The notes under the pieces are model-generated. The model had not been told where the DNA came from. It saw only the letters and a program-made list of their open reading frames with translations, and searched no databases. From the NCBI GenBank assembly GCA_001949185.1, contig BDGG01000009.1, positions 981,624 through 1,045,623 of the forward strand: 64,000 nucleotides of DNA. The letters are read 5' to 3'. Both the position numbers and the translations under genes were made by a program. Below, in pieces: positions 1-63,667 of this stretch (positions are counted from its first letter, which is position 1; each line of letters starts with the position of its first letter). Source of the DNA: Ramazzottius varieornatus (taxonomy: Eukaryota > Animalia > Tardigrada).

Positions 1-2857
1 ACCAAGTTTGTCCCAGGCCTAGTATCGGCAGAGGAAGCTCTCCTCGGTGTTTTAATTTTTTTCTAAACAGATGGTTGGTATGTATCGCGAGCAAAGACAT
101 GGAACCTAAAATACCCCCGAAACTGCCAGAAATCGTAAGGATTTTTTCGAGACTGCGGAAGTTGTACTGACCAGTGGTCATCAGCTGCGTTTCGGTGATA
201 ATACCGCAGACCAGGCAATGAAAAAAGTTTGATTCAAACCGGGCAAAATGGAAATTATGGGGAGCAAAAAAGTATCGTATTGTACTCACAGTGAGTACGG
301 TGGTAATCAAGGTGTTGAGTACGTCTCGCGCATGGCAAGGTTTGGCGGTACTGGTTGCTCACTCAGGCTTGTTGTCTATGGACGACATGCGCACCAAAAT
401 CGCACAGAATTGTTAATCTTTATCCTGAGAATTCGAAAAGCTTTTGTGACGAACAAACATAGATAGAATAATCCTCCAGCAACATTTTAGGACATTTTAA
501 GAATTTTTCTGACAGTCGCCGAATATACTTCGAATTATTGTCAATGTTTGGCAATGACCGCCAAACTGAGCCAGCACTGCATGCGGCCTACTGTAGCTCG
601 GTCTGCGTGGCCCACAGTGTAGGCGCTCTGCATAGCAGGCTCAGTTAGCCTGCATCAGTTAGTTCGCCCTGTCTTCTCTTGCATCCCTCCCTCTACTCAA
701 AACTTATTACAATCAACTCGATTTATCTCCCGCAACCGCCAAACTTTGCCAATCGCTTTATGATCATAACGCTTACCACATCGGGCAAGTGACGTAAAGA
801 AGTAGACAGAGCCCCATATTGGGAGAGTCGGTACCAAGCATAGCCCCATATATCTTGACAAGACTAATGACCAATCTTTCCATTTCCTCCCGTATTCGGT
901 AACGTGACAGACTGCGACGCAGGGAGGCTAGACAGGCGAATCAGACCGTGAGGTCAGCAGTGTAAGCTCGCCCAACTGGATTGTAACACCTTAGGGCTCA
1001 ACAAACCGAAACAACAAGCTGATTATCGAGCCGACGACTGTCCGTACTATCAGACGTAGACAATGGGCGGAGACGCCGTGTCTTCGATGCCATTTGAGAT
1101 CTTTTGTCAGCCAGATTTGGCCAGGTGTCAAACCCGCCTTCCGTTTGGCGTCCGATGTCGTCACTTTCCACTCTTGGTTTTCCTGGCCATCTTCTGCAAC
1201 AGCCCTCTTGTTCCCGGGTATCCCTCTTCCGTGTTTATCCTGCATTGTGTTGAACTCAAGAAAAATTCCTAGTAAGGTAAGCATATTCGTTGCAGGTGGT
1301 TTAGAGATGGAGGGAGATAGAGATGGCGTCAGTGCGTTACATGCAAAGGTTCTGAAATTTCATATGCTTGTTTCATAGTTAATCCGACAGCGTCGTCCTT
1401 TGGAACTCCGACCCAAAGTACCTGCTACAACAAGCTAAACAATTGTTTACGTGCGGAACGATGCTGCTCTAAATTCTGGTGAGTGACTAAGTGGGACTGA
1501 GAAGAATGCCGATGGAAATGGAATTGAAAGTGACCGAACAGATTTTGCGCTGCGCTACTCGATCCTTCCTGAAGGATATCCTTGCTTGCACTGTGTTTTA
1601 GTCCGATGATTGAAACCCCGCAGTCGAGACGGACATTATTAGACATTCCGGACCATCTGGCGTGTGTCGAAATTTAAATCCCTATTGAAATAGACTGACC
1701 ACAGTCGGCTATCGACAAGCTTCCTCTGTGCTTTGTCACCATCAGCCGGTTACGCTGCCTAAGCCTTCTCAATGAATTATTAACCCTCATCGTTTTTCTT
1801 CGTAGTTTCCATCCGACGATCCAGCCCTTTTGTCCCTGAAGAGAATACCTCTGCGGGACGGAAGCATTACAGAAATCATGGTAATCTCTCACCAGACTGA
1901 TGATATAAACTGAAGGTCGGCCCGTCGGGAGACAAACACGACGAGAATTTTCTCTCAACTGACGCACATTCCCATTGGACTTGGGCGAAAGACCGCGCTA
2001 CTTGGGAAAACGATCTCGTCGAGATCGATTGCTGTCCCGAGTGGCGCATGTTTTTGGTGTTTTTAGCTGAAGCGTGCGCCATCAGGAAAAACAAGCTTGT
2101 CTAGTTTATTTGGATGGAGCCCAGATATTGTTTTGGTGTCACCACATTTGTTGTACCGTTAAACTTCACCCCCTGACACGCTCACAAGGTTTGGGTGTCT
2201 GTCAGACTTTCCGATACCGGAAGATCGAGGAAGAAGGAGCAAGCTGGAATTTAGGGAGGATTTACTCGAAGCAATTCTTCGACTTCCGCTTGTGGCGACG
2301 ACTTTTAACTGGGCAAAGTTATTCAGGCCGAAGCTCAAAGTTCTTGCATAGATTTGGGTAGATGGCCAGAGCCATGAATTATGTGGTCAGATCGAAGTCC
2401 GCGTACGTTGTGAACTTGGCTGTTTAACGTAATCTAAAGCGTCAAGTTTTGATGTCTCTCATCGTAATCTGGTTGTGCTTTCAGAGAACACAGCAACCAC
2501 CTCGTTTCGCGCGCCCTGTAAGCCATAGATGGATGGCAACACGGCAATGAATGCTGGTAGTAGTCGCTGAAGGCATGAGCGATATTTGGCGGCGACGTCT
2601 AGAGCTCTTGTTGACATGAATTATACCGGCTAAAGTCCATCCAACCACTTTGATGGTGCCTCTTCACCGTCTGCTCATAAAACGCAAAGTACAGTATACC
2701 GTTCAAAGTGTCTCTCACTCTTTCTCTGAGCATTTTCCCCCAAGCCTTGTGTCGTTTTCACTATTCGATGGCAACATTCCGTGTCAAAAATCGCTAAATA
2801 TCACGTCTTTAGGTCTATCGTACGTTGAATGTTTACTCTCGTTGTCTCCACTTGCAG

Positions 2858-2950
2858 ATTCCACAGTCAAACTCCAGTCCGCGGATAAAACACTCGGAAG
2901 AACCTTTCCGATTAGGTGAGGATCTCGAAGCAAGAACGTTTGCGCTACAG
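2858..2950 (+). other. Candidate non-coding 5'UTR exon, probably of schnurri
   Basis: Pyrimidine tract plus TTGCAG acceptor ending at 2857 and CAG|GTAAGG donor at 2951. An upstream donor AAG|GTAAGC lies at 1277. Confidence 0.35.
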
Positions 2951-5900
2951 GTAAGGGTTAAGTCGAATTCCGCGTAATGCAGATTCAAATTTGTCGGGTC
3001 TCAGTAAGCAACCTCGACAATTTCGTTTTCCGAAGTGGCGCAGGGTTACAGCCAACAACATCCTAAACATGCGTGTCTTTGGACAACAACCAAGCTCGGC
3101 AAGATCGTTTTCCAAGTGGCGCACGCCTGCAGCCAGTAACAGAGAAAGTGTGCGCCACTTGGGGAAAACAACTTGTCGAGTTTGTTTGCCAAGATCGCAT
3201 GCTTATTGATAGTTTTCTATGATCGACCGGAAGGCGTAACACTACCTGCATCGGTTGATCTAGGCAGGTTTTCAGTCCTTTTGCGTCTGACGCTTTGATG
3301 TCTTTGTGGTTGCAGATACGTTTCACAGAAGGTACGAGACTAATTCGATTGGAGGACAAGTGGGACGGGATACACAAAGAAGCCAAGTGATTCACGACGT
3401 TACGGTAAGTTGCAACAACTGGCAGATGCGTCGAGTGATAGTGATTGATGGTTTGGATTGATGCGTAATGTTATGAAAGTGAGTTCGTCAACTCTCTAGT
3501 CTCGTCTGGTGAGGCTCGCTTAAAATGTTGTGGGCTATGAATAAGCTCATGAATCGTTCAATCGATTTACAATTGCGCGCGATGAAACCAGCTTTGGCAT
3601 GCGGGGTACTTGCACTTTTAATGTTGTGGGTTCCTTGTTTGTCTTGCATGTGAATCTCTTGTCTGTTGAAGGTCGGCCTGCTTTTCGGGACTGTTCTATC
3701 GAGAATGATCGATGACTTCCGGTTAGCCGACATTCCCCTCTGATGTTTCCTACGTGTCTTGCAAGAGGGTACCTTGACCGAGGTAGCGGAAGACTTCGGC
3801 TTGTAGCTGTTTGAATGGACCGTCAACGAATAGCAACATTTGAGGGGATGTTCTGGCCTAAGTATTTCTTCTCTCTTCTTCTGTTTGATAAGGCTTTGTG
3901 TCGTAATGTGGGAGTGTGGTTGTGTAAGCGAGAAAGTCTCGCTGAAGTCTGCTGTAGAAAGAGCGTGTTTTCTAGACGTCATGGTTTTAATTAGTGTCGA
4001 AGGTGGGCGAGTTTTTGTTTCGCCCGGTTTTGCGTGTCCAATTACTCATGGGTTTTAATCAGTGTTGAACAGGCTTCGGGTAGCGGGTGTCTATCAGGGA
4101 CAGAGGAGAAGAAAGCGTCTTGGCTCTGCAGTAGTCTATGTGGAGGAAGCGTCTGCCTAGAGGGTTGGATAAGTCGACCAAGATTGATATAGACATTTTC
4201 CAAGCTCAAGAATGCGTCTAAACGGATCCGAGAGAACATACATTAGCCGTGGCGATTGCTGCTCGTTGTCAGTGTGTTGCGTAATCGACTGCAAAGTCTG
4301 GCCTGGTTTGTGACTTTGTGTTGTGGTATTTATATGGTTGATGGACTGTACACAGTCACAAGGCCATCGTTGAAAGGCGATCGCTCGTCTTTTGCCTTCA
4401 ATTGCTCTGATTAACGTTTCCGGCTGAAAGACGCGCTGCTGCTTCTCACGTACACGACTTAATTTCCACCCAGGTCTTCTTATATTTTTTTAATGCGGCG
4501 TAGAACTCGTCCTTTGCGTGTTGACACGAAGGGTTCGTTAGAGAGGGTAATCGTGCGCTATTTGGAGGACGTTGGTTCTTTGAAGGGTTCTCAGAAGAAC
4601 ATCAGGTGACTCTAATCAAAACAAGCCGCGCGGCGGGAAAAGTGTTTACCACAACTGTACGAGTATCGGCTGACTACTTCATGATGAGCTATAATGGTCG
4701 ATGAGTCTCGAGGTAGTGCGTGTATTATTTATGGGTCTTCGCTTCGACGCTGTCTTCCAGCTATCTCTTAAACTTTTCCCTCCAATTGGATGAGAAGGAT
4801 GAACTGGCTTACGTTTCCAAAAAGGCTTGGGGATGTTTTCCTTGTTGCTCTTCTCTCTGGGAGCTCCACCAGGTCGTTCTTGCAAGTGGCGCATGCTACC
4901 AGCTAGTAAGACCGAAAAGGTGCGCCACTGGGGAAAACGATCTGGTCGAGTAAGGTTTCTTTGTATTTTCTTGCTCTCGATGGTGCACTGTAAACCACGT
5001 TGGGTTCGTTGCAATGGCACCAGCTTGCAGTCTTGCACAATCGAAACTTACCTTTGAAAGGGGCGATAAGCGAACAGGGCGTGGTCCAATACCGCAGGTA
5101 TGCTAATCGCGTGAACCATGTTTGAATGTCTGCTCGATGGAAATGCGGGCGTATGCATGTGGGAATATGTGAGGTGGTGCTACTTTCGCTCTGGTCGACA
5201 GCTAACGAGGAATATTTAGGGAGAAATTTCTCTATTTGGAAATTTAATATACTAGATGGGAAGGAGAGGCATGTATCTGTCTGTATGACGGCGACGTCTG
5301 GTTAGTTTTGGCCGCGAATAGCTGCGGGCTATCACGTTGTCTCCTTCCGAGCTTGTTCGACTTTATCGTACACCGAGAGACTTGACTGGTATTCCGGCCC
5401 AGGCAGCTTTGAACGAGTGTAGTGATTCGCATTGGCAACCGTGATAATCTCCGGCAGTAATTCACTTTGCCCTCTCGCTCTCTCCACTGTGAGCCAGTTG
5501 TTACTCATCCACTCGTCTTTCGCTCAAACAAGCGTGGCCTTCTTTGTTGTTCTTCCAGCGCATAAAGGACCTCGGGGAATCACCTGGAATCCCCTTCAAA
5601 CATCGCGCGACTTTTATTTTAGCTCGCACACGCGGTAAGTTCCCAGAGGGCTTTTGAAAGGTTCCTGGTAGTCCCGTAGATTTGGTCAAGAACGCCGGCA
5701 AATTTCGGTATGATCGTTTTTCCCAAGTGACGCATGTCTCCACCCAACAACGCCGAAAAAATGCGCCACTTGGGGAAAACAAGCTCGATTTGATCGTTTT
5801 TCCAAGTGGCGCACGAGTCCAGACAAGGCAAACTGCGCCGCTTGGGAGAATTTTGCTGGTTATGGTACTTTCTTGGTATGACGTGGTGTTTCGCGGTATG

Positions 5901-6641: not shown

Positions 6642-8021
6642 GGTGAAGTAACGTCCATTTTGTTTGCCGGTCTTTGATTTTGGGTCTTCGATCGAATATA
6701 GTTTTGCGTAGAATATTTCTGATGGTTTGCTGAAAGCGTTGAGCGATGAGGAGAGGGTTCGTTGGTGATGCGAGATCAAGCGTGTAATGGCGGGGTTGTG
6801 GCGAGAAGGCACTAGTTGGCCAACTTGTATTTCCGGCCAGCGGATGTATCGACAGTCTAGTGAGCTCTTGCTCTCTCTTGGTGACGCAGAGGTCGTCAGG
6901 AGAAATGTCTTGACTGTTTGCTCGGGCTTGATAATGCCGACTCTTGGTTTGGCTATGCACTTGAAGTGCCAGGGGAAGTTTACTGTACATATTCTTAGAA
7001 ATAAAATGATAACAGATGGAGCGATCAGGCGGCAGCTGCTTGTCCCCTAATCACTAATCAGTCCTCAAGAATGTCCCATAGCGATCTATGGGACCAAGCC
7101 CGAGCTACTCATGGCACGGCGAGCCTCTAAAGCTGCATTAGCCTCTAACTTTTGTGACCAATGCTCGAGACTCTTTTTCTAAACGAACGAAGAGCTCGGC
7201 GAGCAAAATCGGCTTCCCAGATTATTCTCCCAAGTGGCGCACCCTTCCAGCCATTACCACTGACACCGTGCGTGAACTGGGTGAACGGCGATGTTTTGTA
7301 CTGGGCAGACTAGGCGAACAAGGAACTGCATGTTACAAGGCGTCCTCTTTTAGTTTGTGGTACAAGCTGTAGTTTTGAGCTTGCTTTGAGCCTTGGTTTA
7401 GGTTGTCTGAGAAGGGACCGGTGGTCGGCGGAGATAATTACCACGGTATGGCGGCCAAATAAAAGAGACGAGGAGTGTATAGACAGTGAATGGTGGTTGA
7501 GTGGTTCTGGCGCCACAATGTCTGCATTTGTCGCCTGATGGCTTGTGATCACTATGCGCGTTTTAACGAGAATTGTGTTTGATCGTTTGGTCTTCGTTGC
7601 CTTCACTGGGACATCCTGCTTGGGTGGAAGGAGACGCTGGAAATCTGTCACGACCGTGCCTTGTGGTCATCTGACGCTCTTTGTTGGCGCTGTCTAGTTC
7701 GAATTCTTTTGCTGGCTTCACTCTCGCTGCTAACAATGTCTTTTCTCGCAGTTTGAGATGAGGCCGCTTGACTAGCTGGCCGCAAGTTTATAATGACGGA
7801 TGGACCATATGCATTTCAAAGTTACAGTAGCTAAGTTAAGTTAGCATGCACGGACGAACAAGGAAAGAATGTGAATTTACGCGTGGGTAACGTGACGTCA
7901 AAGTAGGTCTCTGATTCATGGAAATCCGGTTTTCATCTGAATGGGTTGAAGGCTACTTTACCACTAACCATGCAATATAACATAGCAAATATCCAAACTG
8001 CCTGTTGAAATGAAACTTATA

Positions 8022-8220
8022 GTTAACGAACTGAACGAGACCGTTTTTCCTAAGTGGCGCACGCGTCTTGCCAATATCACCGAGAATGTGCGCCACTTGG
8101 GGGGAAAACCAGCCGGTCGAGTTTGGCTGTTCTTCCAAGTGGCGCACCTTTTCAGTGTTGTTGGCTGCAAGCATGCGCCACTTGGGAAAACGGTTTTATC
8201 GAGCTTGTCTGCTGAGCTTC
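8022..8220. repeat. Family A dimer with oppositely oriented spacers
   Basis: Arms at 8052 and 8137 (period 85). Spacer 1 is CGCGTCTTGCCAATATCACCGAGAATG (forward) and spacer 2 is CCTTTTCAGTGTTGTTGGCTGCAAGCA (reverse); both are 27 nt. Confidence 0.9.
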
Positions 8221-10265
8221 TAGATATTTCGTTGATGGGGGGAATATGGAGGAAGGTCATTGTGTGCTCAGAATGGAAGGGATCAGTACGATAATGTGGT
8301 AAAGTAATTTAATTTGTTGGAGGAGAATATGTGTGTTTGATTACAAGTTAGGCATGAAGTGGGGCGTGGTAAGCGTGAGAGTTGCGTGTGATTTCCTGCA
8401 GTCCGCACTGCGCAACTCGAAAATGAGGGGAGTAAATCCGCAGTGAAGCTGAAGGTGAAATATAGGCTCTCTAGGTGAGAGCACCGGTTTTGTAATGGTC
8501 GTATATATAGACTACATTGATCTTTTACAGATTCAAGCTAACGGGGATACCTTTGGGTCGACCTTTGGCTTGGGCCATGCGTGACGCTATCAGGGTATAA
8601 AATGCGCGGTTGAATAGGAATGTGGTCGTAAGAGCTGTAATGCGCCTGTTTAGACTCTGGAGATCGATATGATAGAAAGTTGATTGGCGGACGTGTTAGG
8701 TTGGGTCTGTAGACAGGCTAGATTAGATAAGGGTGAGAGGGTCTTTAAAATCGGAAGGAAGTGCGGAACGGAAGGCGGGAAAGGTTCGCCAGACGAACCC
8801 ATCGAGGGAGACCTTCTTTTCAGGTTACGTCGTCATGAGACTTGACTGGGTTGGCTGATTGCCCACTTAGCCTCTTTAACCAGTGGTGTACAGGCTTCTT
8901 TTTAGCATTTGTGTACGGGTACATCATTCGAAAGAAGAAGCTATTTTTGAAGACGCGAGGTCGATTGGAATGTCGTGGCAAGTCTTAGTTGGGGTGTGTA
9001 ACGTTAACGACGGAGTGCGCGAATGAAATGGGGCAGTGTGTGGGCTGCTGCTTGTTTGACTTTCGCCGTACTCGTACGTGTTTTCATTTCTCATCAGTCA
9101 TCACGAGTCTTGTACGAAGTATGGAGAGACTGTCAAGTAGAGTCAGTAGACTTTAGCTGGCTTTGGTGGCGTCAAAGGTGGTGTCTTGTCGATGGATGCG
9201 AGCGAGCGTATAAATCAAGCATCGATGGCCCGAGCTGCCTTGGTGGTGTGTGGTGTGTGTCGTGTCGTTGAAATGCATAAACAGCAGCGCAAGTAGTTTA
9301 TTTTCCTGGTGGATATTTTTAGAGCGACAACGTGGTTATTTCTGGCCACATTCCATGTGGGACCGTGCCGCCATTTGCTAAGGCTGCTGTGTGTTTTTTC
9401 CAGGCTTGCTCTGGTTTTTTTCACCTCAATCACGCCGTTCGATCTCGACACTCACTGGAAGTACTTGAAATATCGTAAGTGACTTTATATTATATGTTTC
9501 CTGCTTTTCGCCCGATCGATTACGCTTCCATCTTGATCAGGTTAACCTGCACGAGCTCCTTGCTTAATTTGAACTTCAAAGGCCGGCAGACGAAATATGA
9601 AGTGGCGTACGCTTCCAGCCAGCAATTCCGGAAACGTGTGCCACTTGGGAAAACAACCAAACTGGGCAAGATCGTTTTTCCCCAAGTGGCGCACGTTTTC
9701 AGCCATTAACGCCGAAAATATGCGCCACTTGGCATTGCGTATTGCCGAGCTGCCGATAGATGTTTCCTGATGAGAAACTTGAGAAAGGAAGTTTTTGTGT
9801 AAGGTGTATGTGAGATAAGGAGAAAAGACCTCATCAGATTTCGATAGTTAACGAGAGCTTGTTTTCCAATGAGATGAATTTTCCTGGAAGGAGATTTGGA
9901 CATGTGTGTCTTTGAGGCAGGAATATTTATAGCTCGCGCTATATAGGCTATTTCGTCATCCAAGAGATATGCGCGGCTTCCGAGGATGTATGTTTTCATT
10001 TGGTGGCTGCAACATATGTGCTAATTGAGGCTTTATGAGGCGAGGCAAGGCATAGTTTGGCTGGTTGTGTCGGCGGCGGACGAATTGCGCTCTTGTTGTA
10101 AAAACTTGTCAAGTCGGTGTCGTGCATAGTAACTCGAGTAAGGAGCCTGAGCTAATACTCTACTGGTGAAGCTACTTTTTTGTGGCCGAGTTGTTTTTCC
10201 GTGACAGCCATCGAGCTGTTCCCTTGTAAGAAGATTATCTCGTCGTATTCGTTGGACCTTTGATG

Positions 10266-10516: not shown

Positions 10517-13359
10517 CTTTGATGTATATTATGAACGAGCTCGTGATCGCGGAAGGAAGTACCTCATACTGAAAGGGTAATTTTGTTTTCTTCTGGGTTG
10601 TTCGTGCTTGAGCGGATAGAGGGTATCTGTGATCGTGAGAGACAGTATGTATGTCAAGTGCGCAGACAATCGATTTTCGATTAGAATATGGTCAATAGTC
10701 TATCACTCATCTTCACTGAGAAATGTGTTTTAGGGCATGGACACTGGAAAATGCAAATTTGAATATCGCGAAGATTTCGAAATTATGACGAGATTTACAG
10801 ACAAAATTTGGGAGCTGGGCAAATAGGATAGACGAAAATCATTTTTTCCCAAATTGTCTACAACAGTGAAGCTGTGCGCCACTTGGGAAACAACCTTGTG
10901 GTGAGATGCTGAGGCAGACGGAAGAAATAGCGGTTGCGTAAAATTTGTTGCGATAATCTGCTATGTTTTTTCTTGACGAACATGTTGACCGGGCATATTA
11001 CAAGTGCGAGGTAAACACGCAGTCAGACATGCGGAGGAATGGCGCAGCGGTGGTCTTCGCCGAAGTACCCAGCCCATATGGAAGAAATATTAATCAAAAC
11101 GCGGCGCCAGGTTGATAAATGGTCTGGCCAAATGGGTTCATCGATATAGCTACATAATAACACGCGGGTTTTTATAGTTGCGTTCGTGTTTGCACGATCA
11201 AGGCTTTTTGCTGACAGTTGGCTTGGAGGATCCGCCTGAACAAAGTCATTTTGCGATGAAGGTGTCACACGACGTAACTTCAACTTTGCTGCTGTCTTTC
11301 TTTAAAACTGAGCTCAAGACGAGACAGTGTCTGTTAATGTTATGGGTGTATCTTGCAAGGTTTGCGAAATGTCTTTGTACTTTTTGTCGTCCTTCTCTCT
11401 CGTTGAACTGCTGGAAGCTTTGATAGTGGCAGCTGACACCGGCGCATGATGCTCGCTTCTTTGTGTCAATCTGTCTGCCAGAATTCGCTGACAAATTTTA
11501 ATGCTGACGATGGCATCGTGCGAGTTTGTACATGTGGCCAAAGAGCTGCATCATTACACACCATACCCGTTTCCGCCTCGTTCACAAATCCAACTGGGAC
11601 ATTCTTACATGCAAATCTGTGGCTTACCGAAGTGCCTGTTTTCATTCGCATATGAGTCAGGGATCATTTTGATTATTGTAGCAAATCCTGAGTTTCTCTG
11701 TGGGATGTCGAAAGGATACTCTGAAGTACGTGTGGTAGCATGGTTTCTCCAAGTGACGCACGCATCCAGCCAGCTACGCTGTGAACGTGCGCCACTTTGA
11801 AAGAGCATCCTGCCGAGTCTTCCGAGTGCCGCACGCTGCCAGCCAGTTTGCCGAATAGATGCGCCATTACGTAGGGAATACGATCTGGTCGAGTTTATTT
11901 CCCCAAGTGGCGCGCGCTCCTAGCTAGGATACCTGGTAAGGTGCGTCACTTGGGAAAATGATTTCGCCTGGTCTGTTTGCTGATTTCCCACATATTATCG
12001 ATGAAGGGTTAAACCGATGGCCGATCAAATGAGATGAGGAACATGTGTGTGTGCGTGTAATGTCTGCGAGTGGAGTGCCAAGGCTACTTTGGAGTCTGAG
12101 CCTCTCATATAATTCGCGTCAGATGACGAGAGGTGAACTATGGAAGCTTTACACGGTAGTCGGGTACGATGGAGCCTGTCGCCGTTGGGTCGATTGACGA
12201 TGGTGTAGTACACTGTACGAACAGACCTTTGGGGCAGCATGTGAGGTGCACTTCTGATGGATGGCTTCTTCCCAGATGGGTTCGCAGTGGTATGGACATT
12301 AGTCAGTGTGTCGATGACGGTAATCACTCGACTGATCTTTGTTGTCGGCAGTACGGGAACAGTGAGGTTTACATTTACAACGTACTGCAGTCTAGTTTGT
12401 CCCGCGCCAGCGTTGTTCGATGTCTTGGTGAATGTCTAAAGGTTGGCCAACGTTTCTCGCGGGCAAACTCCAACAGAATAATAATGCACCCGGTTTAAGG
12501 TATAGTGCGTGGCACTCGAAGCATGCGATATGGCTACGTTAACGTTCAGGGTCTTAATGTTGTTGTGAAAACATCGTCATATCGAAAACCTTCAACTTTC
12601 TCTCGACAAAGCCATCGAACGGAATATCGCGCTTCATTTCTGTTTGCTGTTGGCTTGGCGGTCGGGGAATTGGATAGACGTTGAATGTTGAATGCTCATG
12701 GTGCCTAACCAGTTGTGAATTGATCGGGATACGTTTCCAGGCCAGACAGGGAATATTTGTGGAGGTAATTAAGGGCGTTTTACAGCTGGAATACTCTGGC
12801 CCACGTTTTATCCGCCGCGACCGATATCGAGTGACTGCTTTCCTTCTTTGTGTATTTCTGGAATTTGTGAATGGGATTGGTCTTGGTGAGGGATGGATAA
12901 TTATGGAGTGTGAAGAATATCGAGCGTGACGCTCATGTGTGGTGATTTTTCTGACCTGATTACGTCGATGAGACTTTCGCAGCTCTCAGATGTGTAATAT
13001 GTGCTTATTGTGGTGCGGTCGAGCGCATCGTCTTTATCGCGGACTAGCATCTCTAAAACGTCTAGATTTTTTAGTACAAGCTGGTGCGGAGGGTGTCCGT
13101 ATTTCGTTACCTAATGTGGCTCTGCTGTTTGTTCAAGGTTTTTGGACTGTCAAAAAGCCTAACCGGACCAAAGGTTACTACTGAAGCTCGTGACGCTCGG
13201 CCAAAGGAGTTTCGAACCTATCGAACTGACGGAATGCTCTATGGACATTTAACAGGTAAAATCCACTGAATAAACTTCTCAAAACTGTGTCGAAGTTTTC
13301 GTAGAAAATTTGCATTGATGGTTTTCGTATTATTCAATGGAAAATACCACGCTACATGT

Positions 13360-22838: not shown

Positions 22839-22958
22839 GGGAGCTCGACAAATAAACTCCGCCAGATCGCTCTGCCAAGTGGCGCACGCTTCCAGCTAAT
22901 ATTACTTATAAATTGCGCCACTTGGGAAAGCGATTTGGTTGAGTTTGTTTGGCGAGCT
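22839..22958. repeat. Family A monomer
   Basis: GGGAGCTCGACAAATAAACTC...AAGTGGCGCA-27 nt-TGCGCCACTTGGG...GAGTTTGTTTGGCGAGCT. Confidence 0.9.
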
Positions 22959-50300: not shown

Positions 50301-52781
50301 GACATGACTGGCTCACCTACAACTCCCCGTAGCTGCAATGCTATCTTGTCCGATGGTGGTAAATGACATTTACCTTAGACGAACTGTGACGGACTTCCAA
50401 CTGTTCTGTCCACTCGATCACCAGCCATTATTTTCTCCAATCATGTCTCGATCAAATTAAATGAAGTTGGGAGACGAGAAGGGCAGATCTAGAGGACATT
50501 GTCTGGCTTGAGATATCGGAAATGTGTCGATTCATTTGTGGGGACAAGAGTTGACGCGACGCATTGAAAGCAGTGTGAGGTGGTTGATTATCTCTTCCAT
50601 TGTTGCAATATCTTCAACACAGACACACTCGTTATGAAGATGAACAAAGACAAAAGGTCATGAGGAGTCTGCCATTAGAATGGGAGAAGAGGACTGAAGG
50701 TGGTAATTGAGTTTCGGGCTCATGGACAGATCGCACTGAAATGCAAACGACACCATATGGACCGAATAACGAACACCCAATATGGTTCCTTCACATAGAA
50801 ATCGAGGCACTATTTGGTTGAAGGTTACGGTAAGCTAGCCTGGTTTCTATCTTGAAGCTATCCTGCGATATGGGCCGTCAGAACAGAAACCAATGGGGAG
50901 CCAGAAGGCCTGTGTGGTGTAAGAACTATGGTTTCTATTTTTAGGGGGATTTCTGAACATGGACAGATGATGGTGCTACTGTTGGTGAAAATTAATGAAT
51001 TCGCGAGAGGTTGGCCGCAGCAGGGTGGACGAGACGGCATGGGGTGCTAAACGACTGGTCCACCTGGTGAGTGCGAATTTCTTGCGCTGATTTGGATTAG
51101 CCGGAACCCAGCGGTGCTCTACGGACCTCTACCTCAACTGCTCCTCATTTTCTCCTTCTGGCTTCTCTGTCTTCAAACAAATTGTCATGGATATTCTTGT
51201 AAGCAGTCTTCGCACCAAGCCCTTTTTCTCAATGAACCCCGCGTCGTTTCTAATCGCACCCCGCGTTTAGAAAATCCATTCTCCAGCCGTCTGCCGTACG
51301 CGTATCCATAAGACGCTGGTCTGAGGTTCGCTGAGGCCGCCTCGTTATCAGGGAAGTTGTTGACGAGGGAAGATCTTCTAGCTCGTTTCAGAGCATAAAA
51401 GATGCCAAACGCCAAACGAAGTCGACCAGATCGCGCTTTTCCTAGTGACGCACGCTTCCAGCCGAAAATCACTGTCAAAGTGCGTCACTTAGAGAAACGA
51501 TCATGCCAAATTTGTTTTGCCGAGTAGCGCACGTTCTCATTGTTATTGGCTGGAAGTCTGCGTCACATTAGGGAACCCTCTGGTCGACTTCGTTTGCCGA
51601 GTTCCCAGACACATTTCACTCCCCGTGTTGTAAAACTTGAAACTTGTGTGTGTCCTTTTATAGCCCATATGAAGACAACGGGGTGTCGTGAACTGTACGA
51701 ACCATCTTGTGGTGGGTTTATTATCTTTGTGAACAACAAAGTTCACGGCATTTTATCGTTTCCATATTTACTCTGACCTCTTGAGAAAGGAAGATATTCT
51801 CCAAGTCTATTTCGACCGTGAGGAACAACCACTGAAATTTAGATGGATACGTTTTTCATTAGACGCAGATGTCAATGGTCGAAGATTCAAGCCAAGCTGA
51901 GAGCGGGATGGTTATGAAAGAACGGCACGGGGTCTCCTGCCGTTTCATTAAGGCGGAATTTATATAAAGCTGGGACAGTATCACATTTAATTTTCTTACT
52001 AATGGCTTTCCGGGATAGCATATCGCTTGTATACATTGGGAATACTGGTTGGAAGTGAAGCATGCGAAAGAGAAAGGGTGCAGCAGCTGTATACGTGAAT
52101 GAATTCCAAGCGTCGGTTCCGTCGCGCAGCATGGTGTGTTTTCTTTTGAATGAACCGAGGGGATTTCTTCGGCCGGGATGATTGTAGTGTAGCATCCTAA
52201 AGGTCTTGCTTACTCAAATCTGCTAAGCGGTAATGACAGGAGTTTACAGAAGGTGTCGAGCCTCTGGTAATAACGGGGTTCCTTGCTTCGTGGCCTGCTT
52301 TCTCTCGATGGGATTTTTTGACTAATATCCAGGTGTGAGAATAGGTTCCAGCTTATCACATTGGTTCACTGCGATTTCTATCATAATCTTCCCCCCGTAA
52401 TGCGAAACTCAATCCCCCAGTTCCTCGAACAGATGCCATCCATGGCCAGATCGTTAACGATATCTTATCCTCTCTTTGAACAATCTTAATTGCTTCTGTA
52501 TTGTCAGCACCAGTTCTCTTAATGGGCTTTTTGCAATCGCCTGTCAAATCTAACCAGTAACATATGAGATATTGTGCAGGCTATACTTTGCCCCACACGT
52601 TCGCACCGATCGCGCCCAGGCATTCACAAGTAATTAGAGAAGCATTCAATCAAGACATATCTGCCCCATTATCAACGGATATGTCTCACTCGTTAACCTA
52701 CCGGTATCCATCACGGCGGGTTTTTTTCATGTGATTGATTTCCTCAAAATTTTTTGTAACGTCAACTGCGAACGCGGAAGT

Positions 52782-53027
52782 GTTCGGCAAACAAACTCGA
52801 CCAGATCGTCTTCCCAAGTGGCGCACCCTCCAACCTTTTATAACTAGGAATGTGCGCCACTTGAAGACTCTATTTTTTCCAGTTCGCAATTTTCCAGTTA
52901 GACGGGCTGAGAGCGTGCACGACTAGAAAAACAATTGATCGACTTTGTTTAGCGAAGTGGCGCATGCTTTCAGCCAATAACACCGGCAACGTGCGTCACT
53001 TGGGAGAATGGCCTGGACTGAGCTCCC
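52782..53027. repeat. Family A trimer (three hairpin units)
   Basis: Three units (the middle one degenerate) between TTCGGCAAACAAACTCGACC and GAGCTCCC. Confidence 0.8.
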
Positions 53028-56000
53028 ATTCACTGCTAATATCTAAAACTCTCCGCAAAATAAAAGCTCAAGTTGGATAAAAATTATGATAGCACGTGGG
53101 AGATTGTTTGTCTTAGGGACCCAACAAAGGCCCGAGAGGATAATACACTGGCGAAGCGTGGAACTGGGTTCATTATTTCATTTCTTTTCATGTGCAAGGG
53201 CATGGAATTGCTCGTTGTCAAACAAGGAAATGGTATTATGATGGAGATGGTTTGTATAGGCTCGAGGACAATGAAACTACCTGCAATGGTGAGCAATGGT
53301 TCCTCCTCGGTAAAGTGAAATAAGAATGGGCAGTTATGGCTTTGTTCTCCCTCGTAAAATGTCCTTCCTTTACCTGTTTCGATCGCGCAGTCAAGTGTTG
53401 TGGCGCATCGGACCATCCTATGAAATTTCTCACGAGAGGCCTTTCTTAAGCGTTTTATTTCGGATTCATTCCACCATATTATAAAAATATAAAGAAAACT
53501 GCGGCCTGCCAGTCAAAGGCCAGAAAATCAATTACCGGCACTTGATGTTCCATATTTAATTGCACGACTGTTTTATGAGGGTGTCATTATGTTGAAAGAT
53601 GAGAGATTGGGTGGCGGAGTAATTAAATATCTCTCACAGGTTTTTCTTCCTTTCTGTTTTCTCTCTTCAGGTTAACAATTGACACCCCGCCATCCGAATT
53701 TGACCGGACTGTCTTCCGAAGTGGCGCACATTTTTACTGTTATGGGCGCCACTTGAGAAAACGAGCTTGTCGAGCTCAGCCGTTTTTCCAAGTGGCGCAC
53801 GTCTCTAGCCGAAATAACCGGTAACGTGCGCCACTTGGGAAAGCGACTTGGTTTGGTTCATTTGACCTGCGAAGGACCTTATGTATCATCAGGTGGAATG
53901 ATGCGCCCAGGGAAGATGGATGGTAGGGTGGAAGAAGGAAGAGACGGTCTTTGGGTGGCCGGGGAGAAAAATTCTGCATATTTGTCCCGTGAAGAGAGAT
54001 AAGGTTGATGAGGGGAAGTATGACAGTGAATGTCCGAGCGAAGGAAGAGACCACGGCAGCAATTTTGATAAATGCTGGGAGGGCTGGAAGGTTGATTTGA
54101 GAAATTGTCAAGAGGACAAGAATAATGACGGTTATTATGCTGCTAGCTAGCTGCTGTAAGGATGAGCTAGCTTCCCTGTTCCGTAAGGTGGACATCTAGA
54201 CAGGTCAGGAATGGCAGCTCGAGTTCTTCTTCCATTTAGAGAGGGAATACCTTTTCCTTGTCCGTTAAGGTGGCAAAATACTCTCGTGGCTGGAATGAAA
54301 TGACCGACCGACCCGCGGAATGGAATGGGGACTGCCTCTCATCAAACGCAGTCATTACGCTGACAAACCATCCTGAATAAGGTGAAACAATACTGTGCAT
54401 ACTTTCATTGTCTGTGATTGTCCAGGCAATTGTACTGTTAGCAGTCCGCGACATATTAAGAAAATCTCGTCAAGTGTACTGTCTACTTACTCCTCCTTTT
54501 TGTCTGCCGTAAAACATATTCTTGTGAGGGAGACTCTCTGTAAAGGGCGCAGAGTTTCCTTATGGCTTTATGGTTGATATTAATTGCGGTATGGATTTCA
54601 GGTAGTGAAGCAGCCATCGACCGGCGCCCGGAGGAAGAAACAAATTAACGGTGAACGCTCTAACAGATTTGCAGAGACGATAGCAGCTCTAAAGTGTGAG
54701 GAATGCCGCATCTCGTTAGCGTTCGAGTCTCTTGAGTCTTGACAAGGAGAAGTTTGCGCGATGATCGTCGTGTCAGCGCCGTTATTTGCCCTGAGGGCGT
54801 AATGAAGAAGAAGATCCGATATGGCAAAACAGTTTCGAGACAAGCCTTTTCAGTTTTCATACAGTACGAAATGAACGCACGGCAAACGAACTCGGCTACA
54901 TCGTTTTCCCAAGTGGCGCACGCTGCCAGTCAGTATAGCCGACACCGCAAGCCACTGGGGAAGATGATCTGGTCGAAGTTATTTCCCGCGCTCCCCTATA
55001 TTTTTGTACTGGGGCTGTGTTCACAGTGTTCTGATCAGGTCGAGTAGCTTCGATGGTAGCAAGAAAATCGGTGTTTCTCAGCACACATTTTTGTGGTGTT
55101 GAAAGCTCGGTTACATGTCCACATCCTGTATTGTGACAAGTGTGCATCAGAGCCTCGTATATCAAGGACAAATCACTAGTTAACGCTTCCTTGTCACTGT
55201 TGTTTTATTTGTGCTGGTTGATGATTCTTCTCACGAGCTAATTGACCGGTGTTTGGTTTCCTTCGACTGTAACATAAGTTCGGAACACGGCAGACAAGGT
55301 CGTTCGGATCGTCGTTCCAAGTGGTGCACCTTGTCGGTGATTTTGGCCGGAAGCGTGCGTCGCTCAGAGGAGGATCTGGCTAACAGTTTTTACTGCGTTC
55401 TCAGTCATCTACTCTGACATCGCAGAAGTCTTCATTGAATAAGATGATTGTCCGGGAAGTTTAAATTCATAATTCAGAACTGGTCTTAGAATGCAAGGAG
55501 AGCAACACGGTGTACTTCCTTGTCGAAGAACGGGAATGCTATACGGGAGACCCGTACAGTACGACGGGCGCAGCTTGATGTGGGCGAATGGGCGCGTCCG
55601 AGGGCATTATATGACGGAAGAAAGCTTAAAGTATTGAGCAGTGACTTGTAAACGTATATATGACGGAGATTAGCTCGACACCTATTGTCAATAGGCAATA
55701 GCAGAGTAAATTTTGCAAGCCTAAACCGGGATTAGGATTGACGGACGCAAGTCAATCCTGGCAAGCGGCATTATTGACTGCCGACTATAGTCATTGAAGA
55801 TCGTGGCATCAAAATGCCTTACCGAATCAAGCGACGCGACGTCTTTTGATGAGCAGCAGTCAGGAATGGAATTGGATCAAAATATCAATCCTTCACCTTT
55901 CCTCCCGCGTTCTGACAGCAACTCGCTTTTACGTGACACCAAACTGCCCAGAACTTTTACGCACAGGCGTGTTAGGAACATCGGCAAACAAGCTTAACTA

Positions 56001-58180
56001 AACCGTTTTCCAAGTGGCGCACGTTCTTCGCGGAGAACACAGAACTTGCGCCACTTAGGAAAACACTGAGAACTCGACAAGACCGGGTTCTCAAGTGGCT
56101 TACGAAACCAGCAAGGAGCACTAAAGACGTGCGGCACTTCATGAAAACAATTTTGTCAGGTTTTGCGTATGTTTTCGTGAAGAGAAATGCCGGTGAAACA
56201 CTCCCGCGATTTTAATAAATATTTATCGCTGTTTACAATAGAAAGAAATCTGATGTTTTGTCATTATGTCTGCTGACTCATTATGAGTTCAGATTGTTTG
56301 GTTATTGGATATGTGAAACGGTCTAATTGAGCTCAGCTTGTCGGGACATTATTGCCGCATGTAATGACGCCAGGCTTCAACAGGGCTCAAAACTTTTGAT
56401 ATAGCGTAATTGCGACTTCCTGTTGTGCTTGACTTTCTTGCTTGTTTTCCCACTGCTGTGAATGTCTGATTGCACTGATGGCTCCTACAATGCGACTCGG
56501 GTATTTTGGCAACCTTCACTGTGACTATGCGCTGATTTACGATGTGGGCGTCACAAAAAACGACAAGCAACGTCGGTTGCTGCCGTAATTGATATTCAAT
56601 GAAAAAACGGCACACTTTTTTTATGACAGCATATTTCATATCAAGACACTTCCGTTCTATGCTAAGATAGCTCGAGAAATTCCGCATTCGGAAAACAGTT
56701 TTCGACGATCGAAATCATGCTGTCTTTATTGGGTCTTATTTATTAGGCCAATATTGAGCTGCAAGTTACAGAAAACAATTGGACACGATCGTTTTCAAGC
56801 TGCGCATTTTACAAGTGTTACTGGCTGAAACGGTGCGCCAATTGAAAAATCGATCTGGTCGAGTTCGAGTGTTTTCCCAAGTAGCGCGCGTTTGCGGTGT
56901 TTTTGGCTGGTTGCGTGCGCCGCTTGGGAAAAACGAGCTTGCCGAGTTTGCTTGCCGTGCTCCCAAATACTGCAGAAATCTGGTCGATCCTGGCAAAGCT
57001 CGTGTGATGGAATGCCAGCATGCAAAGTTCCTCTGCCGAGAAGGGCTGGATGTATCCTGCAGTTCTTGCAGCCACAATGAAAATGGAAAACGATTGGATG
57101 CTTCCGGTTGAAGGGCGTTTACTAGCTGCTGTTCCTGCATCACGGAATGTTGAATTCAGAGTAGAGCAAATGGCGAGCTCCTGCTGCGACATGAAGTCTT
57201 GCGGGGCCGAGGCAGGACCATAAAGTACCCGCTGTAAAATCTATATATACTGGGGATGTAAACTGAACCTCGATCAAAGACACATGTACCGTAAAAGATC
57301 AAACCATCGAACCATAAAGAACGAGAAACTTTTGATCAGTACAAGGTTTCCAGACGAACGTCAGGCTTTCTCGTTATGGGCGTGGTGGGACTTGTGGGTT
57401 CTTCGGTTTTCGGAGAATCCGGGTGACCTTTACCTAGCTAGATTTATGTTCTCAAGGCTAGAACAATTTGTAGAGAATATTTTTTATCCATGAAATTTCA
57501 AAAAACTTCAAACATGACTCGCACTTGTTTTAGTTTTATGGCTTAGGGCATAACGGTGGCGCTGTTTATACGTGCTGTGAAAACGTTAAGTGTACAGTCT
57601 ATGGTTAGCTTCAAGCGGTGTAATGGAAGGCAATACCATGCTACCGGAAGGAGTTGCCTTGTGCTTGGTTTGAACGAATGAAAAGGGCGGAATGGGTGCA
57701 TGTCGTTGATAGAGGCTCAGCGAGCCGTCCTCTCAGGGTTGGATCTGCTACTTGCGGCGCACAGTAGGTCCAAAAGCTGCGGTTGACGAGCGCACAGTTA
57801 GGCATCCCTCCGAGTGAGCTTCACAGTCAAACAGTGTGGCTCTTTGGTCTCTCCTCCAAGCGGGATTATTTTGTTACTTGCTCCCTTACGTTCCGTGTTG
57901 TGGTTAACCCACGCTAAGCGCCGATCCCCTGGTCGCCCGATCACGGCTATACAGACAAGTGGAATACTCACGGCTTCAAGTTGGCAGTTGGTCCAGTTGG
58001 GCATCTCTTACTTCCCGTAAGCTTCAGCAGTGGTGACACACCAGGCATCATGTTCGCTTCTTTTATCATAGTCGACTAGCCCATGCCGTTCATCCTGCAG
58101 CGCGACCCCGTGAAGTATCCTTGAGCTATCCTAAAGTTCCCGCCGATCACCAACTCAATCTTCCTGGTCTCCATCTGACC

Positions 58181-61100
58181 ATGAATATCAACGCTTATTC
58201 TTCCCACTCGCAGTACAGTCCCTATGATACCACGCACGCTAACCCGTATGCGGCGGCGGCTGCCGGGTTTCCCTTTACGCGACGCGATCACACTTTCCCA
58301 CATCACGCCATCGACCCCACCATCAACCATGCTAACTCCGCACTACATTTTCAACCGGCCTCAACCTTTGTTCCTTCGCACTGCGCCGACAGCTTCTTGC
58401 CAAAGTTTAGCGACTATGAATTACAAAATTCCAGGTGAGAAAGAATGCTTCGCCTTATTTGGGACGTTGGCAAACAGACTCACCAAGATCTGTCTTCCAA
58501 GTGGCACACCCGTTCAGTCAAAAACACCGAAGACATGCGCCACTTCGGATTTTAGCAATATCGTTCGTCCAAGTGACGCATACTTCCAGCCCATAACAAC
58601 GGAGATGTGCGCCACTTGAATTACTGATATCATTTGCCGACGCTCGATTTTGTTTTGTTGGTTCTGGTTCAGATGCATAAATTTTAAGAAAAAATTTTAG
58701 TTATTATCTTTTTTAAGTTGGTAACCTGAGATTTTGCTTGAAGGTTTTCCAGTTTTCCGACTGGACATGGCGACATGTACGGCCGTGATCCGTTTATGCA
58801 TCCCTACTCGGGGTTCGCCCGTTTCATTCGGCCCGGTCAGCACCTGAAGCAGGAGGTGCGCTGTTTATGGATCGATCCGGAGCAGCCCAACCCGAAAAAA
58901 CCCTGCAATCGGCTGTTTCAGTCGATGAACGAAGCGGTCAATCATATCAATCACGAACATGTCCCCGGACCGGATAGTGGCATCCACGCTTGCCTCTGGC
59001 AAGATTGTCCACGGGGTGGAAAAGCATTTAAGGCCAAGTACAAACTTGTCAATCATATCCGTGTCCATACTGGAGAGAAGCCATTCCAGTGCAATTTTGC
59101 CGGCTGCGGTAAACTCTTCGCCAGGAGTGAGAACCTGAAAATCCACAAACGGACACATACAGGTAAAAATTCACGACAGTTCAAATTTCAACTTTACAAA
59201 CTGATCGGCCGGTCTCAAAAGCTTTTTGTGAACTTAGATGAATATCCGGGTCGCTGATGACCTTTCGGCCAGGATTACTACATAGTAATATACATTTGGT
59301 AAAATAGGTCTGAATCAGTGTTATTTTAATCATTATAATAGGAAATCGACTTTGATAATTAAATTCGTTTTAATTGTGCGGGTTGGCGTTCTTGATTGAT
59401 TGATCCATAATAGGAAATCGAATTTTAATTTTAATAATGGAAATTCGTCAGCGATAATTAATTTTACTTGCAGTCAGCTGATCACTTAGATTCAACATTA
59501 GCACGTGACTTTTAATAATTTCAATTGCATAGTAAAATAACACTGGTCTGAATTCAGGCACTGCAATAACAGTGGCGCATGAATATTATTATTAGGAAAA
59601 TAATCTTTGCAGTCTATTAGCCGGGAATTGTCCGGAGTTAGTCTATTAAAACGGATTTACCTGAAGTACTCGATTCATCTGAATGGTGAGCCCATTATAC
59701 TACCCAACAAAACGCAGACAAAACCCTCTTTTGAAATACCATTCAAGTATTCACGGCTGATGATCTTAGGAAGAACTTTTGTAATAATAGCTAAAAGAGG
59801 CAGTTGAGTGTATATCCGCGCCAAATCGCATAGAACAGTTAGCCAGCAAGACAAAATGCTTATCGATATTGGGCGACACGACAAGGCATAAAAATAGTCT
59901 TGTTGAAAACAAGATGTAATTTGACGCTAAATTACAGCCTCTTATCTTGACCATCCGATCGTCGAGAATCAACCGCTTCGACGAGCATGTTGACTCGACA
60001 ACCAGCATCATTCACTTGATCTCGTCACATTAATTGCTGAATTATCAATATATTCTCCTACCATCATTTCTACCCATTTAAGCTTTGCTCGAATCTGAGA
60101 AGTCACAATATTGGACCGAAACTTCAAGTTTCAAAAGTCTGTCTATTTTACATCGCTTCGAAGACCCGAGCGAATACTTCATGGTCTAGTCGAGAAGAAA
60201 CGAGGGTTCTCGATACTCGTACAACTTGATTTCTGTTTTTTCAACCATGAATTCACTCATACGCGTGTTGCGCTGGATGAAAAAGTCACGCAGTATTAAT
60301 GGTTTTTGCCGTGAATTTCTGATTTGGGTAGGACGAAGAAGAGAAGAATATTCCCAGTGGATTATCAAGCTAGTTTAATGCTGCATGATATTGCGCTGTC
60401 GGAATCTGGGAGCTCGGCAAGGCAACTCGACCAAGTCGTTTACCAAAGTGGCGCACTCTTCCCGCCAATATGAGCCAAAAGATGCGCCACGTCGGCGAAC
60501 GAACTCAGCAAGATTGTTTAGCGAAGTGGTGAACGTGCGTAGTGATAAAGCCTAGAAGTGTGCGTCACTTGGGAAAACGGTGTGGTCGGCTCTGTTTCCC
60601 TTGCTCCCAAATAGATTCAAGAGGAAGAAGATATTTGATGCCTTTTGGGACGTTGGGCAATAGCTGGAGGTTTGATGGGACTTTGATTGTATCAGTTAAG
60701 GGATAAATTTAGCGTGATAAACGATTGTTGGTACAGATTCAATGAAGCACTTAATCGATCTATCAGGATCTGTAGACTGTGCGCCGTCGCCCATCATCCA
60801 ACTCTAACCAGCACCCACATTGTTTCAATTAATTAAGTCTCGATCTATCTTCTCTTGAGCTGGGCCACTTCTTCACTTCGTACAATTTATGGCACCTCGA
60901 TGCAAGAATGGCCTAGCGGGCAGGAAAGGCAGCCAAACGAACGTTTGACTTCGATTAGCACTGCACTACCATGTCGCCAAACGTAATAACGAACCAGCCA
61001 TTAAAACAATGCTAGAAACGTGTCCGCCACTTGCTAAAGACATTAGGCTGGACAAGTGCAAACTTCCATAAAATCCATCAGCGTTATATTGCCCACATAT

Positions 61101-61909: not shown

Positions 61910-63548
61910 TTCCATGCGTGAAGAGCACGGGGCCCAACAGGAAGAAGCCTGCGTGTGGATACACACCAAAAATATACTCCAGTTTTCATGCGTGCGGAAT
62001 TTCGCGCCCGTCGTTCCTGTACCGTTGACTGTGTTGAGAGTGCGCCGCTGCCCCGTTTGAGCGGCGCACGGTTCGCGTGACATGTTGGCCGTGTGTGCCA
62101 CGGGGACAAATGGGCGCCTAAATGAAAGTCATTTCCGGCCGGCACTAGCTGTAATAGCCAGACGTGTCCTCTTTACATACTTTAGTCCCTTTGAATTGGA
62201 AATTGTACTATACACGACGACTGTGTAATGAATATAATGAAAATCACATCCTCTCATTTTCTGGTTCAAGCCTCCCGTTTGACTTTGCGCGCGCTGAATA
62301 CTCAACTGCGCCACAAGTGAATATGCATTCCTTTCTCTTAATTTTGCCTGCGACTGTTCTTACTGGCTCTTCATTGAATGATGCTTGCCGAACATTAAAA
62401 TATGCGTGATGAATACGGCTGACAGTTTAACAGTGTTGATAGCAGGGTATTTCGATGGCGGCTCCTTGCATGTCGTACAAGGAAGTTTATGGCAGCCAAA
62501 GGCTTTGGGTAGCCATCGATATTATAAACTGTGTATATTGACGTGGCCAAATTGATCAGTGTTTAGTAAGATGAGGCGGCTTCTTGTGCATCTGGCGATG
62601 ACCATCGTCAAGGGATAATCGTTTCATCAGGCTGATCATTGCCAGAGGAAGATATTTCATAATTACACTCAACCGAAAGGCGGCGACTTGTGATCGGGTT
62701 TCTCTTTCGCGAAAGCTATCTTGTATCAACTGGTTACAAGAATGCTTTTGATAATTTGCGAGCTAGGTAAATCAGCTCGACCAGATAGCTTTCCCAAGTG
62801 GCGCATGTTTACAGTGTTACTGGCTGGAAACGTGCGGTACTTGCGAGAACAATTTTGCGAGTTTGAATTTCGTCCCAAGTGGCGCATTTTACATTGTTAT
62901 CGGCTGGAAACGTGCGCCACCTGAAAAAAGGACCTGGTTGCGTCTGTGTAAGTCCCATGTATGGATCGGACGCCGAAATTTCTGCACTCTTTGACGTGTG
63001 TCGGTTGGTCTTGAAAGGAATTCAATCGTTGGTCAATTAAGAAATTTAATAAAACCGCTGGTGGGTATTGATATATCTTTCGAGTCCTCTGCACGATTAA
63101 CGCTTACAATCTTGCTTATTAACGAGATCCAGCTTGCCACGATTGACGAAGCAAGCCGTATCTCATAGCTTTGATGTATGATACTAAATAAATAGTGAAG
63201 TGAATCAAAATGCAGTTGGGTACTGTACTACTTGGTGAACTCACCAGACAAGTCTGTTGCATGCTGATGTTGCTGCAAACACGCCACTTGGTCCTTGTCA
63301 TGTCAAGGTTTCTCGTTGTGCTCATACTGTGAAAAGCTGATATCTGCTGATTCTGAACGCCTAGTTTTTCTTATTAATATGTATTTGCTTACAATCTATA
63401 AGCCAGTTTTTGTTTGCTTTGTGAAAAACCTCCCCGGAAATATTTATAAAATTTGCATTTGACGTAACATCCCTACCTTGGCGATCCTATAAGCACAGCT
63501 GTCTTTCAAACTGCCGAGAAGCCAATTTATTGCAGAAGAAAATCAGAT

Positions 63549-63667
63549 GGGAACCCGAAAAACTCGGCCAAATCGTTTTCCGAAGTGGCGCAGGCTTCTA
63601 GTGAATATTTTCGAGAGCGTGCGCCACTTGGGGAAACAGTCTGGTCGACTTCGTCTGCCGAGCTCCC
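63549..63667. repeat. Family A monomer (one hairpin), complete ends
   Basis: GGGAACCC...AAGTGGCGCA(63583-63592)-27 nt-TGCGCCACTT...GAGCTCCC. Confidence 0.9.

Follow-up and report, generated by a model that had tools for sequence, protein, structure and literature searches.

A small fold-back repeat family with well-conserved internal arms in the genome of the tardigrade Ramazzottius varieornatus

We analysed a stretch of 64,000 nucleotides from the tardigrade Ramazzottius varieornatus (assembly GCA_001949185.1, contig BDGG01000009.1, positions 981,624 to 1,045,623), here named the window, which is densely populated by short fold-back elements. Each unit of about 123 bp carries two inverted 10-bp arms around a spacer, in the order GGGAGCTCGGCAAACAAACTCGAC-CAGATCGTTTTCCC-AAGTGGCGCA-(27 nt)-TGCGCCACTT-GGGAAAACGATCTG-GTCGAGTTTGTTTGCCGAGCTCCC. 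The arms are much better conserved than the remainder of the unit, including in copies that were found without using the arms, and the elements are flanked by 4-bp target-site duplications. With a probability of roughly 0.55, we favour the reading that the family is an old, inactive miniature inverted-repeat transposable element (MITE) of Sola type, whose arms would be a transposase-binding motif that was kept while the family spread.

Conservation of the arms in arm-blind samples

Units were detected with a profile hidden Markov model (HMM) trained on the set of arm pairs of the window, and for arm-blind detection the arm columns of the window-trained model were randomised. In the window, the arm-blind HMM gave an identity to the consensus of 0.88 for the arms, 0.71 for the spacer and 0.64-0.67 for the flanks; in 200 kb from other contigs, which were outside the training, the corresponding values were 0.85-0.87, 0.71 and 0.70. 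Across 81 pooled arm-blind units, divergence was 0.125 in the arms versus 0.318 in the non-arm parts, about 2.5 times lower, and about three times lower after multiple-hit correction. The second sample was anchored on an exact 13-nt loop, which occurs 188 times genome-wide (reversed-pattern control, 1): an exact left arm is present in 65 of these units and an exact right arm in 51, while the exact consensus linker 10-mer is found in 4, so that exact arms outnumber it 13-16 fold. The third sample consisted of 43 monomers chosen only by their outer 8-mers, with counts read by eye from the rows, and 87 of their 860 arm positions (10.1%) had diverged.

The first-pass annotation of this DNA had stated that the arms are better kept than spacer and linker; this holds in arm-blind detection, for the termini too, and the excess persists in all three samples obtained without the arm motif. 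It had also called the arms nearly invariant, which overstates a conservation of 87-90% per site. As the initial reader had picked copies by eye through the arms, the excess might have been produced by the search itself; the arm-randomised HMM still separates arms (0.85-0.87) from the rest (0.70-0.71) on other contigs, and both the loop-anchored genome-wide counts and the monomers picked by termini concur, so that we consider such an artefact next to impossible. Because the arms outlast spacer, linker and termini in arm-blind sampling, a putative sequence-specific protein site at the arms is a reasonable reading.

Divergence falls along a smooth gradient, from 15-23% at the outer arm positions to 5-9% in the GCGC core. 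The transition/transversion ratio is 1.1-1.2 in arms and non-arm parts alike, and hypermutation or deamination was rejected on the equality of these ratios. Separate roles for the inner and outer arms of dimers were also rejected (divergence 0.11 versus 0.15, with monomer arms similar). Arm decay and non-arm decay are related by r = -0.07, a value that says little if the copies are equidistant from the root. Among exact arm 10-mers in the window, 62 of 63 lie within elements; a lone exact AAGTGGCGCA at 41016-41025, outside elements and within the first open reading frame (ORF) of a bromodomain gene, is probably a chance occurrence.

Abundance, unit anatomy and pairing

Searching the window for exact AAGTGGCGCA-N(20-35)-TGCGCCACTT hairpins returned 13, compared with 0 in 100 shuffles, and allowing at most one mismatch per arm gave 39 arm pairs. 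The profile HMM found 78 units in 47 elements (18 with one unit, 27 with two and 2 with three), confirming the estimate of about 47 elements of 1-3 units, and the elements occupy 11% of the window. Genome-wide counts refer to an assembly of 55,842,812 bases in 200 contigs, in which 1387 exact hairpins are present. Genome DNA examined directly outside the window comprised eight 3-kb loci and the 200 kb, taken from nine contigs at fixed positions with even spacing, in which 48 units were found; this implies a genome total of about 8,000-13,000 units, or about 2% of the genome. Unit density in the window, 1.2 per kb, is about five times that of the sampled loci. Copies with the exact loop are unevenly spread on contig C1 (16 in 7.2-9.1 Mb, only 3 in 3.1-7.2 Mb), and this megabase-scale patchiness suggests repeat-rich and repeat-poor chromosome domains.

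The 27-nt spacer, previously regarded as free in sequence, has a consensus of its own, CGCTTCCAG-CCAATAACA-CTGAAAACG, consisting of a 9-bp stem extension and a 9-nt loop, with a per-site identity of about 71%. Strong asymmetry within the unit is confined to the loop. Its orientation is random over the window, with 24 plus and 22 minus copies (runs test z = 0), on which ground an orientation bias along genes was rejected. The commonest form is a dimer of about 195 bp, within a full range of 123-260 bp per element; dimers show a single junction type with a period of 79-85 bp, which corresponds to about 80 bp of internal sequence, roughly columns 15-93, duplicated in tandem. At both element ends GGGAGCTCGGCAAAC... 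is found in inverted orientation, the terminus reading GGGAGCTCGG..., so that the terminal inverted repeats (GGGAGCTCGGCAAACAAACTCGAC) noted earlier are indeed there, but badly decayed. In about 6 of the 47 elements, here named subfamily B, the inner terminus ACGTAC replaces CTCGAC and the linker carries GCCATC; these changes occur as mirror images in the two halves, whereas the arms and the loop remain unaltered.

A spacing of 27 nt, first described for nearly all intact units, is found in 77-88% of units, depending on the sample, the remainder being mostly 26 (30 of the 39 arm pairs above, 71-74 of the 81 arm-blind units, and 57 of 69 among the exact hairpins listed for contig 1). The indel rate per site is 0.004 in the spacer, like that of the linkers (0.006-0.013), which does not bear out a selective retention of the spacing. 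The two arms of a unit decay without correlation (Spearman -0.006): the partners of arms with at least three changes carry fewer than one on average, and mismatches per arm follow a near-binomial distribution rather than an all-or-none pattern. As the arms decay independently, selection on the pair, either as a stem or as a dimeric site, does not fit, and the dimeric protein-binding site proposed in the first-pass annotation is unlikely.

Its other proposal, a structure-dependent replication signal, is unlikely as well. Watson-Crick pairing in the arms, linker and stem extension equals the independent-column expectation, and compensatory double changes are not in excess (arms, 3 versus 5.8 expected; linker, 43 versus 43.6; stem extension, 19 versus 20.6). 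More broadly, the element could be selected as a DNA cruciform or hairpin, or as an intronic RNA hairpin, with a role in replication, recombination, splicing or small-RNA production. Such an explanation can point to an ancestral unit that was a near-perfect hairpin of about 55 bp, to the best copy (22839-22961), which still folds as such at -39.5 kcal/mol (z = -9.8), to the symmetry of subfamily B, kept through mirrored changes, and to a dimer that takes up most of an intron of the bromodomain gene. Against these points stand the pairing at independent-column level, the random loop orientation, and the folding of most other copies, which is largely lost, many of them folding no better than shuffles (z from -0.65 to -3.7); a search of the window with Rfam 15 gave 0 matches above the gathering score. 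Because no covariation is seen, structural selection is largely refuted, and we regard it as improbable.

Transposon class and the origin of arm conservation

The 4 bases abutting each terminus are A in 59%, A/T in 77%, A/T in 77% and T in 68%, with no preference further out, and a perfect 4-bp direct repeat flanks 10 of the 43 termini-selected monomers. Six of these 10 duplications are non-AWWT words (ACAT, AACT twice, ATTC, ACAG and ATCT), hence target preference alone cannot explain them. In a second set, the duplication is perfect in 2 of 18 elements (null rate, 0.016). The family thus does have 4-bp target-site duplications, at AWWT, where none had been recognised before. About 40% of copies have no recognisable duplication, and recombination chimeras, flank indels or decay are possible causes; two well-preserved monomers (C4:1742856 and C17:172498) have mirror-image flanks, AAAT...ATTT or ATTT...AAAT, rather than a direct repeat.

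Terminal inverted repeats, a fixed-length 4-bp duplication and a small, non-coding, high-copy unit place the family among MITEs. AWWT duplications of 4 bp have been described as a "hallmark" of Sola1 transposons (PMC3845634) and occur also in Sola2-type elements (PMC3627910), and from the duplication alone we infer a Sola-type DDD transposase as the mobiliser. The only transposase-like piece in the window is an ORF of 203 aa at 46453-47061 (minus strand), which weakly matches the C-terminal dimerisation domain of hAT at E = 5e-4, short of the Pfam cut-off; it is probably a hAT transposase relic without a link to the fold-back family, and a hAT partner was rejected, as this is a weak C-terminal fragment and the duplication is not 8 bp. 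We know of no Pfam model for Sola. Elsewhere, an open ORF of 308 aa with a strong piggyBac domain (DDE_Tnp_1_7, E = 2e-49) was found on contig C7 at about 203 kb (locus 2971-3894, minus strand).

The first-pass annotation had drawn a parallel to the bacterial REP/BIME/REPIN elements, and a eukaryotic analogue of these would consist of single-stranded DNA hairpins moved by a Y1 (HUH) transposase of the RAYT or IS200-IS605 type. The families do resemble each other in their short imperfect palindromes, singlets and doublets, non-coding location, high copy number and a motif conserved above its surroundings. The tardigrade family differs by its animal host, its terminal inverted repeats and target-site duplications, and the lack of structure-preserving covariation or of compensatory changes in the stem. 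Terminal inverted repeats with 4-bp duplications are expected of DDE/DDD cut-and-paste transposition and not of Y1/HUH single-strand transposition. A search for Y1_Tnp (PF01797) gave 0 matches in the tardigrade genome and matched 6 of 14 control genomes; the absence of a Y1 (RAYT/IS200) transposase makes the likeness one of appearance. The parallel therefore fails, and a REP-type origin appears very improbable. A literature search on the hairpin motif returned nothing relevant, and none of 98 metagenome contigs with the hairpin pattern carries the tardigrade family by the arm-blind HMM. In 72 of these 98 contigs, mostly human-gut assemblies, identical 10-bp inverted arms surround one fixed, unrelated 25-nt spacer (37 contigs, with the reverse complement in 35), presumably a conserved bacterial or phage hairpin.

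The family appears to be old and inactive, without young copies: for three copies, identity to the nearest relative in the genome is 73-81%, and both this identity and the number of shared non-consensus bases are at the chance level for a star-shaped family of 13,000 copies. Linkage between variable sites is small in the 81 units (z = 2.6), with significant pairs only in the right-flank columns 98-108, which we read as the dimer junction and subfamily B. Non-arm changes in the same units are unmirrored between unit halves.

Target-site duplications are host DNA, identical at insertion, and hence can serve as a clock. We used the two inner duplication positions, which are not conditioned by the search, in the 43 monomers: 20 agree at both positions, 14 at one and 9 at none. 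With a single decay rate, host-flank divergence is 0.33 (0.23-0.45) versus 0.10 for the arms of the same monomers. A mixture model fits better (p = 0.047), with 57% of copies keeping the duplication at a decay of 0.11 and 43% having unrelated flanks; this flank decay is close to the arm divergence of 10.1%, which favours selection on the element. The clock is ambiguous between element-level selection and constraint after insertion.

According to the reading we favour, an old Sola-type MITE, the elements, which inserted by cut and paste into A-W-W-T sites and left 4-bp duplications, are a family in which the inverted GTGGCGCAC core would have been the subterminal binding site of the transposase. 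While the family spread, over a long time and with every intact copy a potential source, descendants would have come only from lineages with good arms, and non-arm sequence would have been free to drift in each lineage; once the transposase was lost, all parts would have decayed alike, by about 10-12%, and the 27-nt spacing, inherited from the palindromic ancestor, would persist because indels are rare. The near-binomial, independent decay of the arms looks like a neutral clock running for a shorter time, subfamily B has the same arms and loop despite its mirrored change of terminus and linker, and general experience with MITEs favours selection at the level of the element. The earlier premise of uniform erosion in any old MITE leaves such selection during the spread out of account. 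Several observations weigh against this reading: conservation is among the poorest at the extreme termini, which transposition normally requires; the sample looks almost star-like, while element-level selection needs shared ancestry; under the single-rate clock, the flanks would have diverged like the non-arm parts and three times as much as the arms, which would mean constraint after insertion; and no autonomous partner with the termini of the family was found in the 290 kb of genome DNA searched.

The alternative that we consider possible, though doubtful, is that a resident protein binds each GTGGCGCAC site and that the arms were kept after one old burst, by selection or another sequence-specific process. 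Candidates for such a protein are host factors with an architectural or regulatory role and a transposase that was domesticated; its binding sites, carried by the roughly 10^4 elements, would be arrayed over the whole genome. The contrast between arms and the rest at equal transition/transversion ratios, the nearly star-like family with scarce linkage and no close relatives, the unmirrored changes between halves and the homogeneous clock speak for it, as does the smooth fall-off from the GCGC core, which is like a binding-site profile. However, about 2 x 10^4 sites would each have to be under selection, which is a demanding requirement, mismatches per arm are not all-or-none, the better-fitting mixture equates flank and arm decay, and subfamily B shows that the arms were conserved already during the evolution of the element. 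That the roughly 10^4 MITE copies are a working genome-wide array of paired sites, with GTGGCGCAC kept intact because a domesticated transposase of Sola type or an architectural protein of the host binds it, we put forward as a still more tentative idea.

Coordinates, context and relatives

The elements of the window are listed in Table 1.

Table 1. Fold-back elements in the window, as grouped by the profile HMM (window coordinates; strand is given as "." unless assigned).
Position	Strand	Content	Basis
1926..2113	.	2 units	HMM
2998..3193	.	2 units; exact hairpin 3114-3160	HMM + exact pattern
4861..4962	.	1 unit	HMM
5707..5858	.	2 units	HMM
7203..7272	.	1 partial unit	HMM
8025..8222	.	2 units, opposite loop orientations; exact hairpins 8052-8098, 8137-8183	HMM + exact pattern
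9599..9744	.	2 units	HMM + exact pattern
10858..10894	.	unit fragment	HMM
11731..11987	.	3 units	HMM
14346..14531	.	2 units	HMM
15701..15860	.	2 units	HMM
18688..18833	.	2 units	HMM
20372..20567	.	2 units	HMM
22839..22961	+	best-preserved monomer, 123 bp; arms 22877-22886, 22914-22923; 4-bp duplication ATTT at 22835-22838 and 22962-22965	HMM + exact pattern
23511..23592	.	1 unit, subfamily B	HMM
24525..24717	.	2 units	HMM
26449..26584	.	2 units	HMM + exact pattern
27963..28052	.	1 unit, subfamily B	HMM
28100..28150	.	right-half unit fragment, counted separately in the HMM grouping	HMM
28815..28937	.	1 unit, subfamily B, ACGTAC mirrored on both sides	HMM
30000..30150	.	2 units	HMM
30796..30956	.	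2 units, subfamily B	HMM
32641..32784	.	2 units	HMM
34847..34963	.	1 unit	HMM
35625..35774	.	2 units	HMM
36485..36688	.	dimer, both termini, 204 bp	HMM
37525..37637	.	1 unit, subfamily B	HMM
38406..38561	.	2 units, between bromodomain-gene ORFs	HMM
40231..40426	.	dimer in intron of bromodomain (BET-like) gene	HMM
42180..42355	.	2 units	HMM
42945..43055	.	1 unit	HMM
44505..44606	.	1 unit	HMM + exact pattern
45239..45352	.	1 unit	HMM
45609..45731	.	monomer, subfamily B	HMM
48128..48313	.	2 units	HMM
49734..49979	.	3 units, both termini	HMM
51411..51606	.	2 units	HMM
52778..53022	.	2 units	HMM + exact pattern
53689..53866	.	2 units	HMM + exact pattern
54873..54995	.	1 unit	HMM
55283..55388	.	1 unit	HMM
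55978..56164	.	2 units	HMM + exact pattern
56772..56964	.	2 units	HMM
58461..58634	.	2 units	HMM
60408..60608	.	dimer, both termini	HMM
62761..62950	.	2 units	HMM
63545..63667	.	1 unit; exact hairpin 63583-63629	HMM + exact pattern

The intronic dimer of the BET-like gene (196 bp) lies between two bromodomain-encoding ORFs and accounts for most of the intron there (40206-40447, minus strand), which measures at least about 240 nt. A canonical GTATGT donor (40447-40442, minus strand) is located 6 nt outside the dimer and a CTAAC...AG region about 20-30 nt past its other end, leaving only about 45 nt between donor and branch/acceptor region once the dimer is subtracted. In this one intron, the splice sites are not supplied by the dimer, unlike in an introner element. 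A search of representative proteins with one bromodomain exon matched only multi-bromodomain proteins, and an exon-by-exon homologue search with this gene gave no close tardigrade relative. Orthologues of METTL15 were identified in Hypsibius exemplaris and Paramacrobiotus metropolitanus. A second, unrelated hairpin family, with four copies of ACCTGCATACAT...GTGTATGCAGGTG of about 51 nt, is present at 15092-17955 of the window, within the region of a zinc-finger (Schnurri-like) gene.

Among described elements, Sola1_NA of Bombyx mori and Rhodnius prolixus are likewise short and non-coding, with long terminal inverted repeats and 4-bp AWWT duplications (PMC3845634). The insect Sola terminal repeat starts with GG and holds ...TTTTGAAAGTGGTG..., which by eye resembles the tardigrade TTTTCCCAAGTGGCG (PMC3845634). 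In contrast to Sola MITEs, the tardigrade element is one fold-back with a 9-nt loop, is often tandemly doubled, and is best conserved in an internal 10-mer instead of the termini. Drosophila Foldback (FB) elements consist almost wholly of inverted repeat that contains tandem sub-repeats, are kilobases long and make 9-bp duplications; FB and fold-back MITEs share with the tardigrade family the predominance of inverted repeat, the tandem sub-repeats and the possibility of long hairpins, whereas the 123-bp unit and 4-bp duplication set the latter apart from FB. Rodent B2 short interspersed elements carry CTCF sites, and Made1/miR-548 represents palindromic MITE-derived hairpins; in both, as here, one protein-binding or hairpin motif has been multiplied to thousands of copies by a mobile element. 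In the CTCF motifs of insects and vertebrates, the 3' half presumably resembles the GTGGCGC core of the tardigrade arms.

In conclusion, the 4-bp AWWT (Sola-type) signature is now attached to the most abundant small repeat that we met in this genome. About 2% of this very compact animal genome belongs to the family, which should be masked and named in tardigrade annotation. Its unusual point is the conservation profile, with a slow internal 10-mer, poor outer termini and almost no subfamily structure. If constraint after insertion is true, the family would provide a large natural set of repeat-borne protein sites in an animal without chromatin maps; if not, it would be a clean case of transposon-level selection imitating host constraint.

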